A stretch of 5,165 nucleotides of DNA, taken from Chlorokybus atmophyticus (lineage: Eukaryota; Plantae; Mesostigma and Chlorokybus algae). The stretch lies in the NCBI GenBank assembly GCA_009103225.1, contig RHPI01001065.1, forward strand, positions 11,930 through 17,094, written 5' to 3'. Positions 1-5,165 of the stretch are shown here, one piece after another (the first letter of the stretch is position 1; the number at the start of each line of letters is the position of its first letter). A program made the position numbers and the translations under genes. The notes beneath the pieces are model-generated. The model did no database searches and was not told the DNA's origin. It saw only the letters and a program-made list of their open reading frames with translations.

Positions 1-282
1 GGCATCACCCTGTGATTAAGCCCCCTTCTTGCTCACTTTCTTGCCCCCTTCTTGCCTGTGCCACCTGCTTTCGCTGCTAACCAGCAGGAAGTGGAGGTGT
101 TCTTCCAGGTGACATGACAGGAGCTTGACATGACAGGATAGAGGAAAGACAATCTCGTAGTCTTTGTACAGGATAGAGTGTGTTAGCTCTAGCTGCCTGT
201 CTGCGTGTGTTGAAGGATTGCAGCAAAATGCAATCACCCACATCTGCCTGTCGTTGTATGCTTAGGATCATCCCGACTGCAC

Positions 283-302
283 GCGGGTTCACTGCGAACG
301 CA
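283..302 (+). repeat. Dispersed 20-nt motif GCGGGTTCACTGCGAACGCA (copy 1 of 3)
   Basis: Exact reverse complement at 921-940; 18/20 direct copy at 788-807. Confidence 0.9.
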
Positions 303-353
303 CCGCTTTGGGAGCCTTGCTGGCTGCTGTTTGTATGCAGTCACGGCACACAG

Positions 354-476
354 GTAAGTGTGACAGCACTTGTAGAGTGGAGGTGGTAACAGAAGTCCGC
401 AGTAAGTCATGAGGTATGCATCGCTCTCGTGCATATACTAACTGTGATTGCATTTCACCTTCTCAACCACCTCCAG
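354..476 (+). other. Probable + strand intron of an unidentified transcript (alternative donors at 354, 402, 414)
   Basis: CAG|GTAAGT at 354, GTAAGT at 402, GAG|GTATGC at 414; perfect TACTAAC branch point at 436-442; pyrimidine tract ending in CAG at 474-476. Confidence 0.55.
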
Positions 477-590
477 CCTCTGCATGGAACTTGTTGGTCG
501 CGATCTGCTCCAGGGCTTTTGGATGGACGGCGGTTGTACCTGCCGCTGGGGTTGGGTTGCTGTTTGTGATATGGCAACTCAGGCTGGCAG

Positions 591-628
591 TCCTTCTCCC
601 CCCACCCACCCGAGAGAACACCTCTTGC
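591..628 (+). repeat. Direct repeat of the foldback's outer arm
   Basis: 591-628 vs 752-789: 32/38 identical (TCCTTCTCC-CCCACCCACCCGA...ACCTC). Confidence 0.85.
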
Positions 629-642
629 TGCTGTTGACATGC

Positions 643-673
643 CGCCCTCGTACTGGCACGCCCTCGTACTGGC
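643..673. repeat. Short tandem duplication (CGCCCTCGTACTGGC x2, 16-nt period)
   Basis: 643-657 identical to 659-673. Confidence 0.9.
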
Positions 674-757
674 CCCGGCAACCGCTGAAACCGGGCATGT
701 GTCCAAAGATTGCACGCAACCAAAGGCATGCGCACAGCAACTTAGAAGTTCTCCTTC

Positions 758-966
758 TCCGCCCACCCACCCGACACAAAACCTCCTACGGGTTTACTGC
801 GAACGCAGGATGTGGTCCTGCAGAGCCGTCTCGCGCAAGTCACGTACTGTAGACTTTGTGCACATGCTTAGAGCCTCTGGTTCATGACTTTTGCGAGTCA
901 GCTTTGGTTGGACCATACCCTGCGTTCGCAGTGAACCCGCAGGAGGTCTAGTCTCGGGTGGGCGGA
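758..966. repeat. Long imperfect inverted repeat / foldback (~210 bp)
   Basis: 758-818 vs the reverse complement of 910-966: 50/57 identical plus a 4-nt indel. Inner 822-847 vs the reverse complement of 880-905: 19/26 (hand alignment). Confidence 0.9.
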
Positions 967-1073
967 CGGCGCAACAGGGCATGAAGGTGCTCTGGAAGAG
1001 ACCCTGCCCAGCAGGTCAGTCTTTCCCGTGCTGGCAAACAGAGGCATCCTCGTGATTAAGACCTCTTGCTGAC

Positions 1074-1079
1074 TTTATT
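1074..1079 (-). terminator. Candidate polyadenylation signal (AATAAA) for the MTase gene
   Basis: TTTATT on the + strand, ~75 nt downstream of the MTase stop codon. Confidence 0.4.
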
Positions 1080-1153
1080 GGGTCGCTCATTCTGTTGTTG
1101 GGTTTGAGTTCAGGCTAACAAAGTGGCCAGCAATCAAGAGCTACCTCTACCTT

Positions 1154-2315
1154 TCAGTAAAAAGGAGGGTAATCAACAGTGAAGCCTATTGCTTCCAGCA
1201 ACAGCCTGCCTACATGTTCAGAGTAAGTTGGTGGAATGGCATTCTTGACTTCCGATTCCGCATCCATCCACTCCACCTGCATGGCAGACTGCCACCCTGC
1301 AATCGTGCCACGGCAGGATGCTTGGCCGTACACCGGGTAAATTTGCCTCTCCCCAGGTAGCAACTGCCGGCGCTGCTCCGGGTGGGTGGCCAGCTCTCCA
1401 AGTGCACAACCAGTGTGGTTGCATTTCAAGTCTGAGTGCAGTGGAGGGTTTGTCTCGAAGATGCGATGACGATACACATCCAACTTGAACATGGTGCCAC
1501 ACAGCTTCAGGTGAGTTGTCATGTGTCCTGATGCGCCTGCGACATTCTCTATCACCCATGGCTTGCCGCTCAACTGCAACTTGGCTCTTATGGGGTCAAT
1601 CAGGTTGACGTGCTCCCATCGATTGCCGTACGCGGAGCGCTGTGTAGTGGGAATGGCCCCACTTAGAGCTTGACATGGAGGACTTGCCCACACCGCAGCG
1701 TATGCTGTCGGGTCAGCGTCCATTGCATCCATCTGGCAGAACTTGAATGGGTATGACGGTTGTGGCTTGTTGTCGATGCCCTCAACATCAAACCCTGCCC
1801 TGTACAGACCCATGGCTACACCACCAGCGCCGCAAAAGAGATCCAGTGCGCGCGGCCTGCAACGTCTTCCGTTTGAGTCTATTGTTGTGCGTGTGATCAG
1901 AAGGGGTGGGGACTTGGGCCATCGATCGAGCTCTCCACCAGGCAAGTCTTGCAGTTTCAGACAGCTTTGACCACCAACACGAACCATTACGTCGTAACCC
2001 TTACGCACAGCTGCCATGTTCCAGTTCTTTATCAAGATGTGGTGCAGCCGTGAGTCCTCAACGAAATCGTCGTACTTGATGGTATGTTTTCCTGAGCCAC
2101 ATGTTTGCCTGAGCCGGTGCTTGCATGAGCGTGCGCATGTAAATACTCTGCAGTATACCTGTGTTGGCATCAAAAGTGATGATGTGGCCTGCATACCAGG
2201 AGCTCATTCCTGGCCAGTACACCACAACGCGGCATGCTACCAAAGACTGCCCCTCATCAACAATCTCCTTCCGCCAAGCAGCCAGTGTCGCGACATCGTC
2301 GACAACCGCGTTCCC
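1154..2315 (-). CDS. Tudor-domain-fused C5 cytosine DNA methyltransferase; exons 2315-2159 and 2091-1154 (alternative in-frame ATG at 2324)
   Basis: Motif I RALDLFCGAGG (R codon at 1852), catalytic motif IV SPPCQ (Cys codon 1675-1673), motif VI VIENV, motif VIII YRHRIF, motif X NAIPPTYSEHVG; stop TGA 1156-1154. Splicing out 2158-2092 (ACAG|GTATAC...GGCTCAG|GA) yields the Tudor-like LVACRVVVYWPGMSSWYAGHIITFDANTG-KHTIKYDD in frame with the MTase. The first 34 aa of the 346-aa track ORF are probably not real (intron plus out-of-frame exon). Confidence 0.88.
2092..2158 (-). other. Spliceosomal intron (67 nt) within the Tudor domain coding sequence
   Basis: GT...AG, phase 1. Removal restores the continuous Tudor pattern (...FDANTG-KHTIKYDD). 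Confidence 0.85.
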
Positions 2316-2991
2316 CTTTGGCATTCAAGAGTAAGTTGGTCATGCATGCAAGCGCTGTTTTGCTGTTTGCAAGGACAGTTCAACTCGACAACCGCCAAGC
2401 AGCCAGTGTCGCGACATCGTCGACAACCGCGTTCCCCTTTGGCATTCAGGAGTAAGTTGGTCATGCATGCAAGCGCTGTTTTGCTGTTTGCAAGGACAGT
2501 TCAACTCGACAACCGCCAAGCAGCCAGTGTCGCGACATCGTCGACAACCGCGTTCCCCTTTGGCATTCAAGAGTAAGTTGGTCATGCATGCAAGCGCTGT
2601 TTTGCTGTTTGCAAGGACAGTTCAACTCGACAACCGCCAAGCAGCCAGTGTCGCGACATCGTCGACAACCGCGTTCCCCTTTGGCATTCAAGAGTAAGTT
2701 GGTCATGCATGCAAGCGCTGTTTTGCTGTTTGCAAGGACAGTTCAACTCGACAACCGCCAAGCAGCCAGTGTCGCGACATCGTCGACAACCGCGTTCCCC
2801 TTTGGCATTCAAGAGTAAGTTGGTCATGCATGCAAGCGCTGTTTTGCTGTTTGCAAGGACAGTTCAACTCGACAACCGCCAAGCAGCCAGTGTCGCGACA
2901 TCGTCGACAACCGCGTTCCCCTTTGGCATTCAAGAGTAAGTTGGTCATGCATGCAAGCGCTGTTTTGCTGTTTGCAAGGACAGTTCAACTC
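2271..2991. repeat. Tandem array, 121-bp unit, 5 full copies plus 116/121 nt
   Basis: Units start at 2271, 2392, 2513, 2634, 2755 and 2876. The only difference I saw is A>G at 2449. Confidence 0.98.
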
Positions 2992-2993
2992 AC

Positions 2994-3398
2994 CCTGTTG
3001 TTGACATCGTCTTCGATTACAGTGGACTTGCCGCGACCGTTGCGCACGAGCTGACGTCGAACCACATTGCACATCTCCCCATCGCGATATGCTCCAGGCC
3101 GTGCCCAAGGCAGGTGATTCATGGGCTCGCCGTCCCACTCAAAATTGGAAAGCGAGCACTGCAGGCAAGTGCACTCCTCCCAAAAGAAATCTGGCCTCAT
3201 GCATTGTGCCAGCAGTCTGCATTGCCTCACATTGTCCCCCCTTGCCTTGTGGTGCCAGCAGGCTTCATAGAAGCCATACTGCTCACTGTACAGCTNTCTG
3301 TACAGCTTGCACTTCTCTTGATGCTGTTGCAGACGTCTGTTGTTGCCATTCCTAACCAAGTATGCTTTGCAGAAGCTACACACTTTGACGCCGCGCAT
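2994..3398 (-). CDS. Probable first exon of the Tudor-MTase gene; Cys/His-rich, with a C2HC (BED-like) zinc finger
   Basis: ATG 3398. VKVCSFCKAYLVRNGNNRRLQQHQEKC fits CxxC...HxxxC, and a CTCLQC motif follows. The frame ends at a consensus phase-0 donor AACAGG|GTGAGT (GT 2993-2992) just before the stop, matching the phase-0 acceptor CCAAAG|GGGAAC. Contains the N at 3296. Confidence 0.55.
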
Positions 3399-3563
3399 GC
3401 TGGCGCCACGCTACCTGGCACACAAACCCTAGAAGCTAATGCACTGGACGGAAGAAGAAAAGGAGCATGTACGCAAATTGTGGAGCATATCCGGATTGAC
3501 TTTCTGGCTTGTTTTGAATCGGGATTGGATGTGTCCTAAACCCTTAATTTACGGTAGGCAGTC
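3399..3563. promoter_or_regulatory. Putative bidirectional promoter region between the divergent genes
   Basis: Inferred from head-to-head ATGs at 3398 (-) and 3689 (+). Telo-box-like AAACCCTA at 3424-3431 and CCTAAACCCT at 3535-3544. Confidence 0.3.
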
Positions 3564-3611
3564 ATGACGGTGGCGACGGCGGCGGTGTCAGCGGCGGCAG
3601 CGTGCCTGCAG

Positions 3612-3687
3612 GTCTTTGCTTTGGCTGTATGGAAGTTGATTGGAAGTTGCTTGCAATATGTTGGCTGACTGCTTTTTATGTTTGTAG
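3612..3687 (+). other. Probable 5'-UTR intron (76 nt) of the transposase transcript
   Basis: GCAG|GT donor, GCTGAC branch-like motif at 3664-3669, TTTGTAG acceptor one base before ATG 3689; length matches the other introns. Confidence 0.55.
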
Positions 3688-3688
3688 C

Positions 3689-5165
3689 ATGAGCTACTTT
3701 CGCAGGTGTTTTTGCCGCGACTGCAAAGGGAGCAAAGTGTTCACACACAACCACATTAGACGGGCTGAATATCATGAAAACTTTGGCAAAAACATGTGGT
3801 GTGGCACTCCAGAAGCTGTTGCTCCTGAATACCGTGATCGACTACAACCCCATGAACTTGAAGAAGCTGATGCTGCTGTTGCTGCTGCATCCTTACACAT
3901 GTCGTCAGGTACGAGAGCAACTTCTCTACAGCTGTGAATCTATACAACAGGCTGTCTGATCATTGATCTGGCTTGCCCCAGGTGAAGCTCTCCATGACAC
4001 CGAACAATTGCTAGTTGGGAACGACGCTACTGAACATGTTGACACAGGCACGCCGTTGCAACCGAGTGTTGAATCTCCTTTCAATGTTGCAGCCAACTTG
4101 CAACCAGCAGGTACGACCTGACTTGCGTGGCATGTTGACATTGCTGATGCTGTGCCTCTCATTGTTCATGTGCCACTAGACTCATTGCAGCTGGCAGGTT
4201 GTAATCCGTGTGCTCATGAAGGACAATGTGCTTATGGAGAACAACACGGATCTCACCCAGCATTTTGTGGAATTGAGAATGCTACATTGCAAGAGCATCA
4301 AGGTGCCAGAACCAAATCCACAAATGGACAAGTAGAGCCTGAGACGCCAGTGCACTGCACCTCCACTGCTGAGCAAGTCGATGCGGAGCAAGGTGATGCG
4401 GAGCAAGGTGATGTTGCCGGCGAAGACCAAGACTATGAAACCGATGTGGAATCGCAGCCGGACGAGGCTAAATGCGTTGATGATGCCATGCTACTTGACA
4501 AGGTGAATGCTGCGTTGCTGGATAATGCAAGCAACCCTGTTGTTTTCGGCTCTCGTACAACCCCTCTAGGCATTTCCATGCTGCTATTGGTTCTGGCGCA
4601 GCTACATCGAATACCCTTCAATTTCATGAATCAACTGCTCAGGTTGGTGGGCAAATTACACTGCTGACTGCTGAAACATCAGCCTGTTCAGAACTGATGT
4701 GTTTTTGTGTGCCAGGTTGTTGCGTGGCATCCTCTTGCCTAAGGAGAATAAGATGCCAGGCAGCATGCACGAGCTATTGAAATGCCTTGAAGGCCTCAAC
4801 ATGGGCTTCCACACATATGATGCCTGTCGCTGTGATCACATGTTGTATTGTGGCCGACATGCCAACAGGATACTTTGCAAAGGTGAGCAATTGTTGCAAA
4901 TGTTCACTACAATGGGATTTGATTAGCATGTCCCATCAGCATACGACTTGCTTATGCAGTCTGCAAGGCCCCTCGCTACCGCAACATAGGAGGTAGACAA
5001 GTTGCATGGAGGATTGGGCGTTACTTTGACGTGCCTGCTGCGCTGAGGGCTATGTACCTAAAACCTAGTGTTGCTGCGGTGATGATGGCGCACACAAATC
5101 GAAGTCAGGATGGGATTATGCGATCTATACACGGTAACATTGCCAAGTTCAGTGGTAAATGAGGC
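3689..5165 (+). CDS. CACTA/En-Spm superfamily transposase (TnpD-like), spliced, 3'-truncated by the window; exons 3689-3908, 3982-4110, 4180-4642, 4716-4882, 4960-5133
   Basis: GT-AG introns of 73, 69, 73 and 77 nt join the frames with matching phases (1,1,2,1). The N-terminus MSYFRRCFCRDCKG...HIRR...F resembles the transposase-associated CxCxxC domain. The spliced region LLRGILLPKENKMPGSMHELLKCLEGLNMGFHTYDACRCDHMLY...CKVCKAPRY...YFDVPAALRAMY...MMAH...DGIMRSIH follows the En/Spm pattern LLP-x-N-x-LP...AC...C-x-LY...CxxC-x3-RY...YFP...RL...WH...DG-x-MRHP. Exon 4960-5133 is missing from the ORF track. A further donor at 5134 is needed to avoid TGA 5160-5162. The catalytic DDE region lies outside the window. 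Confidence 0.88.
4380..4409 (+). repeat. In-frame 15-bp duplication (DAEQG x2) in the acidic linker of the transposase
   Basis: GATGCGGAGCAAGGT x2. Confidence 0.9.

Follow-up and report, generated by a model that had tools for sequence, protein, structure and literature searches.

The window, by which we mean the whole 5,165-nt stretch of Chlorokybus atmophyticus DNA analysed here (contig RHPI01001065.1 of assembly GCA_009103225.1, 11,930-17,094 of the forward strand), contains an apparently intact copy of a gene encoding a Tudor-C5 methyltransferase (MTase) fusion; as a unit that moves together with the adjacent plus-strand gene, it is a candidate only. On our reading, to which we give about even credence, the window comes from the interior of a large cut-and-paste element of this streptophyte alga, an old, cargo-carrying DNA transposon of the CACTA/EnSpm superfamily that is present in few copies. 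The piece would comprise the first five exons of a transposase gene together with a divergently transcribed accessory gene, and the product of the latter would be a 499-aa reader-writer protein with a Cys/His-rich N-terminus, a Tudor domain of the plant PDS5C/MSH6 type and a compact C5 cytosine DNA methyltransferase. The features of the window are as follows.

1..1153, no strand: 3' flank of the MTase gene, with a palindrome, a few short repeats and ten strain differences
1154..2091, minus strand: MTase exon 3, encoding the rest of the Tudor domain (its C-terminal half), then a linker and a complete, compact predicted C5 MTase domain; stop codon at 1156..1154
2092..2158, minus strand: MTase intron 2, 67 nt, GT..AG, located within the Tudor-coding sequence
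2159..2315, minus strand: MTase exon 2, encoding the N-terminal Tudor half (residues W169 and Y176), with a phmmer match to PDB 7DE9
2271-2991, no strand: tandem array, 121 bp x 6.0, 99% identical, TRF score 1435
2316..2993, minus strand: MTase intron 1, 678 nt, GT..AG, with a single donor (2993) and six identical acceptors
2994..3398, minus strand: MTase exon 1, 135 codons, a Cys/His-rich N-terminal region (14 Cys/His) ending at a phase-0 junction
3399..3688, no strand: divergent intergenic region, 290 bp, with a GGC-rich simple stretch (3566-3602) at very high depth in all runs
3689-3908, 3982-4110, 4180-4642, 4716-4882 and 4960-5133+, plus strand: exons of the plus-strand gene in the splice model, cut by the window end

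The MTase gene has three exons on the minus strand (3398..1154), which splice into 1500 nt in frame with a sole, terminal stop codon and encode 499 aa. The product is a predicted C5 cytosine DNA methyltransferase with all conserved family motifs intact. Motif I (DLFCGAGG at residue 271) aligns with all relatives, and motif IV, the catalytic Pro-Cys, is present as SPPCQ at residue 324; motif VI (ENV at 369), motif VIII (RHRIFE at 395) and motif X (AIPP at 472) all fall in invariant alignment columns. A search of 5.8 billion proteins returned thousands of homologues with PF00145, at E-values down to 1e-69, and the protein matches phrog_363 at E 1.4e-26; the Pfam score for PF00145 was 21.4 bits, below the cut-off of 22, and covered the N-terminal half only. 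The Cys/His-rich region encoded by exon 1, which contains an ambiguous base (n) at position 3296, gave no match in family searches, and its fold model (pLDDT 40) was unusable.

In the tree, the catalytic domain is nested in a family of the phage and giant-virus type, where it groups with P0001, P0002, P0004 and P0011 at 99/93 support. These four are MTases with an inserted methyl-CpG-binding domain (MBD), encoded on compact virus-like contigs downstream of a 2OG-oxygenase/PLOD-like ORF, and three of them (P0001, P0002 and P0004) have PPCM or PPCF at the motif IV position. P0012, which branches next, is encoded on a 47-kb contig that carries a giant-virus-like gene set (zf-MYND, Na/Ca exchanger, DUF5856 and N6/N4 MTase), and hundreds of relatives, at 36-46% identity, are carried by IMG/VR contigs. 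Small C5 MTases of phages and giant viruses (phrog_363) and their MBD-inserted relatives P0001, P0004 and P0011 belong to the same catalytic family at 42-54% identity, with insertions and a C-terminal G(Y/F)xxDYPP tail in common with the window MTase. Whereas the virus-type relatives are encoded by intronless ORFs on compact contigs, and several have an MBD inserted in the variable region, the window MTase has no MBD there; its additions are a Cys/His region at the N-terminus, a Tudor domain and spliceosomal introns. The enzyme is of a laterally acquired type of the kind that mobile elements carry, and its gene is a reader-fused, intron-containing nuclear gene distinct from the canonical host DNMTs. 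The catalytic domain would have been acquired from a giant-virus or phage lineage, with the introns and the Tudor module gained later.

The exon-2 half of the Tudor domain matches PDB 7DE9 (E 0.01, 19.4 bits, phmmer), which is the Tudor of PDS5C/RDM15 (bioRxiv 10.1101/2022.05.28.493846); the exon-3 half searched alone against PDB gave no match, and Pfam was blank on the split pieces. In RDM15, the aromatic cage consists of W616, Y623 and Y641, the monomethyl-specific acidic pair of D643 and D645, and the H3R2 contacts of E647 and Q654 (PMC8184781). After splicing, the window protein has W169, Y176, Y194 and D196 at the RDM15 spacing, on a mapping that assumes no gap in the second half. The first Asp of the pair is thus kept as D196, but Asp645, Glu647 and Gln654 are replaced by V198, D200 and L207, so neither the acidic pair nor the H3R2 contacts are reproduced; therefore, H3K4me1 specificity should not be assumed for this Tudor. 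The PDS5C/RDM15 and MSH6 plant Tudors resemble it across the first half, at E 0.01, and have the W/Y/Y cage and first Asp at identical spacing; their partners are cohesin or mismatch repair, whereas the window Tudor is partnered with a DNA methyltransferase. The Tudor-C5-MTase gene of the original prediction is borne out by the splice model, the homologues, the phrog_363 match and the catalytic motifs, and its Tudor part is probable from the exon-2 match and the cage spacing.

The 678-nt length of MTase intron 1 is due to inflation by the 121-bp array, in which each unit repeats the greater part of the original intron together with 45 nt from the start of exon 2. Short-read contigs stop at both edges of the array, and the contig for the unit has a depth of 45.6 in read set X2, versus ~20 beside it. 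The array may weaken correct splicing of the present MTase copy, and might even inactivate it. It does not figure in the original prediction.

The plus-strand gene begins 291 bp from the MTase gene, ATG to ATG, so the head-to-head pair predicted at ~290 bp is confirmed. Its introns are 73, 69, 73 and 77 nt long, all GT..AG, and its exons encode 384 aa without an in-frame stop. The proposed common intron style of 67-77 nt describes these four introns and the 67-nt MTase intron 2 (67, 69, 73, 73 and 77 nt, all GT..AG), but not the 678-nt MTase intron 1. The 290-bp region between the two genes would serve as a promoter region common to both.

We found no CACTA or CACTG terminus, target site duplication (TSD) or convincing subterminal repeats within the window, which is cut on the right side at 5165; the predicted CACT(A/G) terminal inverted repeats (TIRs) and 3-bp TSD enclosing both genes are thus not present in it. 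The only CACTG (290) and CAGTG (929) are part of a longer inverted repeat, which continues outward for another 7 nt; what lies between them is 644 bp of flank and not the genes. Nor does the flank beyond the MTase gene hold the subterminal-like repeat field that had been described: positions 1-1153 contain a 211-bp imperfect palindrome (759-969) and a few short repeats, namely the 20-mer GCGGGTTCACTGCGAACGCA in three copies, a 34-mer in two copies and a 16-nt tandem duplication (643-673). The word GACWGTC is absent from the window.

A search for public sequencing runs found DNA runs but no RNA run. In the DNA runs, the locus has approximately single-locus depth, and two independent data sets contain both junctions, with the same flanks and ~99% identity; they gave no sign of insertion polymorphism or recent movement. 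Diverged extra contigs, all short fragments, overlap 1407-1494 in the MTase gene, 3438-3544 between the genes and about 4611-4776 in the plus-strand gene; therefore, related copies exist. The similarity of a paralogous contig ends exactly at the MTase stop codon, position 1154. Between strains, 731 nt of the catalytic exon (1154-1884) show 0 differences versus 0.74% elsewhere (Poisson P 0.005), which fits constraint on the enzyme. Among coding differences between strains, 12 of 13 are non-synonymous, including all seven in the MTase gene.

Some of these observations suit an alternative in which the host took up the Tudor-MTase gene laterally from a virus and domesticated it, so that the gene adjoins a transposon or transposase-derived gene without moving together with it. 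The same locus and flanks at roughly single-locus depth in both data sets suit this alternative, a catalytic domain that is invariant between strains would be expected of a gene useful to the host, and a paralogous contig that loses similarity at the stop codon suits conservation of the gene more than of an element; moreover, laterally acquired "orphan" DNMTs occur in many eukaryotes (PMC12344493). The tight 291-bp head-to-head arrangement with its common intron style and the seven-of-seven non-synonymous differences count against it, however, and an array within an intron is an odd thing for a needed gene to tolerate. We consider this alternative unlikely, if the most serious of the three weighed here.

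The transposon reading depends further on the identity of the plus-strand gene, which by layout alone looks transposase-like. The N-terminus of its product has a CxCxxC..H motif, then an acidic stretch and then a Cys-rich block, and this fits what we take to be the N-terminal layout of CACTA TnpD proteins (CxCxxC..H, acidic spacer, LP..N.MP....E..K.L..L, DAC.CDH.LY, C..C...RY, ..YF..P..L). The diagnostic DDE/tnp2 domain (PF02992 and associated domains) would presumably fall beyond position 5165. Pfam was blank for pieces of the gene (queries of 55-171 aa), as were a word-index search with its 171-aa ORF and an Atlas search with its pieces, and exon 5, searched exhaustively with HMMER against 1.84 billion proteins, matched only spurious repeat proteins. 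Of the spliced En/Spm-type transposase in the original prediction, the spliced, open five-exon gene therefore stands, whereas the En/Spm identity found no match in any of these searches. Empty or spurious results throughout, and an assignment drawn from motif layout, would suit an unrelated Cys-rich host gene, in which case the transposon frame would be wrong. Against this, blank results are expected because the pieces are short and the Pfam models cover a region downstream of them, and the fit to TnpD N-termini, a lead and not a test, points the other way; we regard an unrelated host gene as quite improbable.

Decay of both genes into relics, with six acceptors and frameshifting pseudo-exons in the array precluding a working MTase and the locus drifting neutrally, is comparably improbable: the excess of non-synonymous differences, the multiplication of the acceptor and of 45 nt of exon 2 in a 121-nt unit that is not a multiple of 3, and the lack of any transcript-derived protein of the MTase gene among the 5.8 billion proteins searched would suit it, but reading frames are fully open through eight exons, the catalytic motifs and Tudor cage are all intact, 731 nt of the catalytic exon are unchanged, and the single donor joined to the last acceptor would yield an intact mRNA.

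Under our preferred reading, that of a cargo-carrying transposon, the MTase gene and the plus-strand gene would move as a single element. The Tudor domain would bind the H3 tail at a methylated lysine, with the MTase then methylating cytosines nearby. Such cargo might benefit the element, perhaps through marks placed on its own chromatin or on that of the host; the self-regulation, mimicry or counter-silencing of the original prediction would be speculative roles of this kind.

Several kinds of mobile element are already known to bring along enzymes that modify chromatin or DNA, among them DNMT retrotransposons, fungal elements with TET/JBP genes and the Plavaka cassettes of red algae. The giant Plavaka/EnSpm transposons of red algae are 17-19 kb long and carry accessory genes (PAG1-3), with most copies old and degenerate; their cargo consists of DNA-methylase/SET and ParB-2OG accessory genes (bioRxiv 10.1101/2025.02.11.637652). 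Like the present candidate, they place DNA- or chromatin-modifying accessory genes beside a transposase of the EnSpm superfamily; however, they combine a methylase of the N6-adenine type (PF01555), joined to SET, with ParB as the DNA-binding module, whereas the window has a C5 MTase fused to a Tudor domain and its membership in an element is putative. SymbioLINE-Dnmt and SymbioDIRS-Dnmt3 in dinoflagellates and the Dnmt3 retrotransposons of Klebsormidium (PMC5890265) are likewise algal or protist mobile elements that encode their own C5 methyltransferase, in one case within a streptophyte alga. Being class I elements, they encode the DNMT in the retroelement's own ORFs, and the Dnmt3 types among them are of eukaryotic origin; in contrast, the window has a putative class II transposase as neighbor and a separate MTase gene of the phage/giant-virus type with a Tudor domain. 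In fungi, EnSpm, Plavaka, KDZ and other DNA transposons carry TET/JBP dioxygenase genes (PMC12730594), and here too an enzyme of the 5mC system is a separate accessory gene, one that has passed between transposon lineages. Whereas TET/JBP removes or oxidises 5mC, the window MTase would write it, and whereas the fungal elements were defined with TIRs and TSDs, neither was found in the window. In the literature searched, we found no C5 methyltransferase with a fused histone-mark reader that has been linked to a cut-and-paste transposon.

A broader proposal, which we advance tentatively and lean against, is that a DNA-transposon lineage in an early-diverging streptophyte alga carries a heritable, self-contained epigenetic reader-writer as cargo, in which a plant-type Tudor domain would recognise a methyl mark on histone H3 and a C5 methyltransferase of giant-virus origin would then write 5mC there. 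The element, not the host, would then set cytosine methylation, for example cloaking itself as host-like chromatin or damping its own activity, and the cassette would be swapped among unrelated transposase families. If the link between the two genes holds, the window would represent viral enzymes rebuilt as eukaryotic, intron-containing transposon cargo, and it would provide a compact natural reader-writer, with a histone mark directing DNA methylation, in the sister lineage of all other streptophytes.

Reading both strands under a splice model gave two genes that point away from each other, with 291 bp between their ATGs; the head-to-head, two-gene anatomy of the original prediction (~290 bp between ATGs) is correct. 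The joined exons of the minus-strand gene, which encodes the methyltransferase, form a 1500-nt frame with a single terminal stop and a product of 499 aa. The five exons of the plus-strand gene join without a stop into 384 aa as far as the window reaches, and this gene leaves the window immediately after the GT at 5134. All introns of both genes are bounded by GT..AG. The proposed intron style of 67–77 nt holds for the four introns of the plus-strand gene (73, 69, 73, and 77 nt) and for intron 2 of the methyltransferase gene (67 nt), but not for its intron 1, which is 678 nt long.

Features of the locus (window positions)
3398..2994, 2315..2159, 2091..1154, minus strand: exons of the methyltransferase gene (splice model)
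3689-3908, 3982-4110, 4180-4642, 4716-4882, 4960-5133, plus strand: exons of the plus-strand gene (splice model)
2271-2991: tandem array of six 121-bp units, 99% identical
759-969: 211-bp imperfect palindrome, 74.5% self-complementary, with arms (759-818 and 910-969) that are 85% complementary

Rfam and tRNA scans of the window returned no match. At position 3296, codon 35 of methyltransferase exon 1, the base is ambiguous (n), and the assembly is uncertain there. Within the divergent intergenic region, a GGC/GCG-rich simple stretch (3566-3602) reaches a depth of up to ~213 and is covered by many short contigs in three public read data sets (X2-X4), indicating that similar stretches are common in the genome.

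The minus-strand gene was confirmed as a C5 DNA methyltransferase. A protein search identified 6901 relatives (top E-value 1e-69), the PHROGs database returned phrog_363, “DNA methyltransferase” (E-value 1.4e-26), and the aligned protein retains the motifs DLFCGAGG, SPPCQ, ENV, LCGTMF, RHRIFE, and AIPP; against Pfam PF00145, exon 3 scored 21.4 bits, marginally below the 22-bit cut-off. Among 62 family members in a maximum-likelihood tree, the protein groups with P0001, P0002, P0004, and P0011 at 99/93 support, and all five share extra segments and a C-terminal DYPP tail. In three of these four closest relatives (P0001, P0004, and P0011), the variable region contains an inserted methyl-CpG-binding domain, a reader-writer combination that differs from the Tudor-methyltransferase of the window. 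The contigs encoding the four relatives are compact and intron-free, and an ORF resembling a 2OG-Fe(II) oxygenase/PLOD-glycosyltransferase lies directly upstream on the same strand of P0002 (L001:3-1439) and of P0001 (L002:2-541). The next sister, P0012, shares its 47-kb contig with zf-MYND, a Na/Ca exchanger, DUF5856, and an N6/N4 methylase, a gene set that looks like that of a giant virus rather than a phage. Hundreds of relatives with 36–46% identity occur on IMG/VR and metagenome contigs. Based on the tree placement, the contigs of the relatives, and the IMG/VR matches, the catalytic domain is assigned to a phage and giant-virus lineage and not to the canonical eukaryotic DNMTs.

Exon 2 by itself matches PDB 7DE9 (E-value 0.01), the Tudor domain of PDS5C/RDM15 in complex with H3K4me1 (bioRxiv 10.1101/2022.05.28.493846; PMC8184781). 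Once the 67-nt intron is removed, W169, Y176, Y194, and D196 correspond to W616, Y623, and Y641 of the RDM15 cage and to D643 with identical spacing, which also supports the splice model of the methyltransferase gene. RDM15 residues D645, E647, and Q654 are replaced by V, D, and L, so the mark read by this Tudor domain cannot be named. Exon 1 comprises 135 codons, 14 of them for Cys or His; family searches, including Pfam and PHROGs, found no recognisable family for it, and a single-sequence AlphaFold model was unusable (pLDDT 40). A “Lectin_C” lead from the ESM Atlas for this region (score 0.90, with just 110 of 256 features shared) was rejected as a probable chance match to a Cys/Trp-rich piece.

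Each unit of the tandem array combines the greater part of the original intron 1 with the initial 45 nt of exon 2, and unit 2 differs by one base (2447). The donor GT (2993) is kept in the first unit only; the acceptor is kept in all six. An intact methyltransferase would result from joining 2993 to the last acceptor (2316), and use of an inner acceptor would add out-of-frame sequence. Short-read contigs end at both edges of the array, which shows that the repeat is real in independent data. In X2, the contig of the array unit has a depth of 45.6 compared with ~20 alongside, suggesting that the strain sequenced there has fewer than six copies.

No tool backed the En/Spm transposase label given to the plus-strand gene. 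Pfam matched none of its pieces, all of which are short; a word-index search with the 171-aa ORF of exon 3, also a short query, found no match; and the ESM Atlas gave no usable match for the short exons 4 and 5. Exon 5 (57 aa), searched exhaustively with HMMER against 1.84 billion proteins, gave four matches, all internally repetitive and unrelated to transposases, and these were rejected as spurious. These blanks carry little weight because the pieces are short and because a tnp2 domain, as in CACTA transposases, would fall past position 5165. The order of features along the product (CxCxxC..H, an acidic spacer, a hydrophobic block, DAC.C..LY, C..C...RY, and YF..P) resembles that of CACTA TnpD N-termini, which is a lead to its identity; the product is probably a CACTA-superfamily transposase.

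X1 and X2, DNA data sets that come from two different studies, contain ~79% of the window's words. Two junctions are spanned by their contigs, with ~99% identity and a depth that varies little: the one between the flank and the methyltransferase gene, and the one that links methyltransferase exon 1 to the plus-strand gene across the intergenic region. The contigs show no sign of insertion polymorphism or of many near-identical copies of the locus. Contig depth was 18–26 on main paths and 4–13.5 on alternative paths, values from which copy number is ambiguous. Additional diverged contigs overlap 1407-1494, 3438-3544, and ~4611-4776, and contigs with unlike continuations meet at 1154 and 2303. 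The genome therefore contains related copies, albeit with the linkage of their parts not visible in these contigs.

Compared with these two data sets, the window has 28 substitutions. None falls in the 731 nt of the catalytic exon (1154-1884), where 5.4 were expected, versus 0.74% in the rest of the locus (Poisson P 0.005). All seven coding substitutions in the methyltransferase gene are non-synonymous and lie in exon 1 and the Tudor-methyltransferase linker; in the plus-strand gene, five of six are non-synonymous. This pattern fits an enzyme core under constraint and a remainder under little. The CpG observed/expected ratio is 0.55–0.67 across the locus and 6 of the 28 differences occur at CpG, figures whose meaning depends on the genome baseline.

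The subterminal-like repeat field proposed for the 1153-bp flank beyond the methyltransferase stop is unproven. Besides the palindrome, the flank has a 20-mer present three times, a 34-mer present twice, and a 16-nt tandem duplication (643-673); it has no k-mer in common with the gene pair, across which no k-mer other than the flank motifs is enriched. The palindrome, possibly a foldback or MITE-like insert, contains CCCACCCACCCG and GGGTT(C/T)ACTGCGAACGCA, motifs that recur at 591-624 and 283-302. The tandem duplication sits within a plus-strand ORF (639-884), possibly what is left of a decayed retroelement gag; its weak zinc-knuckle match (zf-CCHC, E-value 0.016, “ETGHVSKDC”) lacks the two leading Cys and is at most a decayed remnant itself.

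The sole CACTG/CAGTG pair (290 and 929) encloses flank sequence only. As terminal inverted repeats of a 644-bp element it was rejected: the inverted repeat extends 7 nt further out, and the triplets on either side do not form a direct repeat. No left terminus can thus be named within the window, which also has no copy of GACWGTC (0.73 expected). In X1 and X2 contigs, the 28 nt at 1039-1066 recur ~63 nt upstream of window base 1, with 35 other letters between this second copy and that base, and window positions 1-27 form a third, degenerate copy (…GGCATC..C.GTGATTAAG…). Some 1.1 kb of flank is thus bracketed by short direct repeats.

Mobile elements carrying DNA- or chromatin-modifying genes have been described in several forms: DNMTs within retrotransposons of dinoflagellates and Klebsormidium (PMC5890265); TET/JBP in fungal EnSpm, Plavaka, KDZ, and other DNA transposons (PMC12730594); an N6-methylase-SET gene and a ParB-oxygenase gene in giant Plavaka/EnSpm elements of red algae (bioRxiv 10.1101/2025.02.11.637652); and a ParB-amino-methyltransferase in Ectocarpus Sola1 elements, in a paper that also reports a Gypsy element as the first transposable element with a Tudor domain (PMC12477816). 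“Orphan” DNMTs gained by lateral transfer are also common in eukaryotes (PMC12344493). Our literature search found no paper in which a C5 methyltransferase fused to a Tudor domain is linked to a DNA transposon. The observation behind the original prediction was largely right, and its reading of the methyltransferase gene as cargo travelling with the plus-strand gene in one CACTA/EnSpm transposon is plausible, with the odds about even; the 5.2-kb window has neither element end and so does not settle it. If the link to a transposon is real, the locus would represent a new form beside the known elements that carry DNMT, TET/JBP, and N6-methylase genes.
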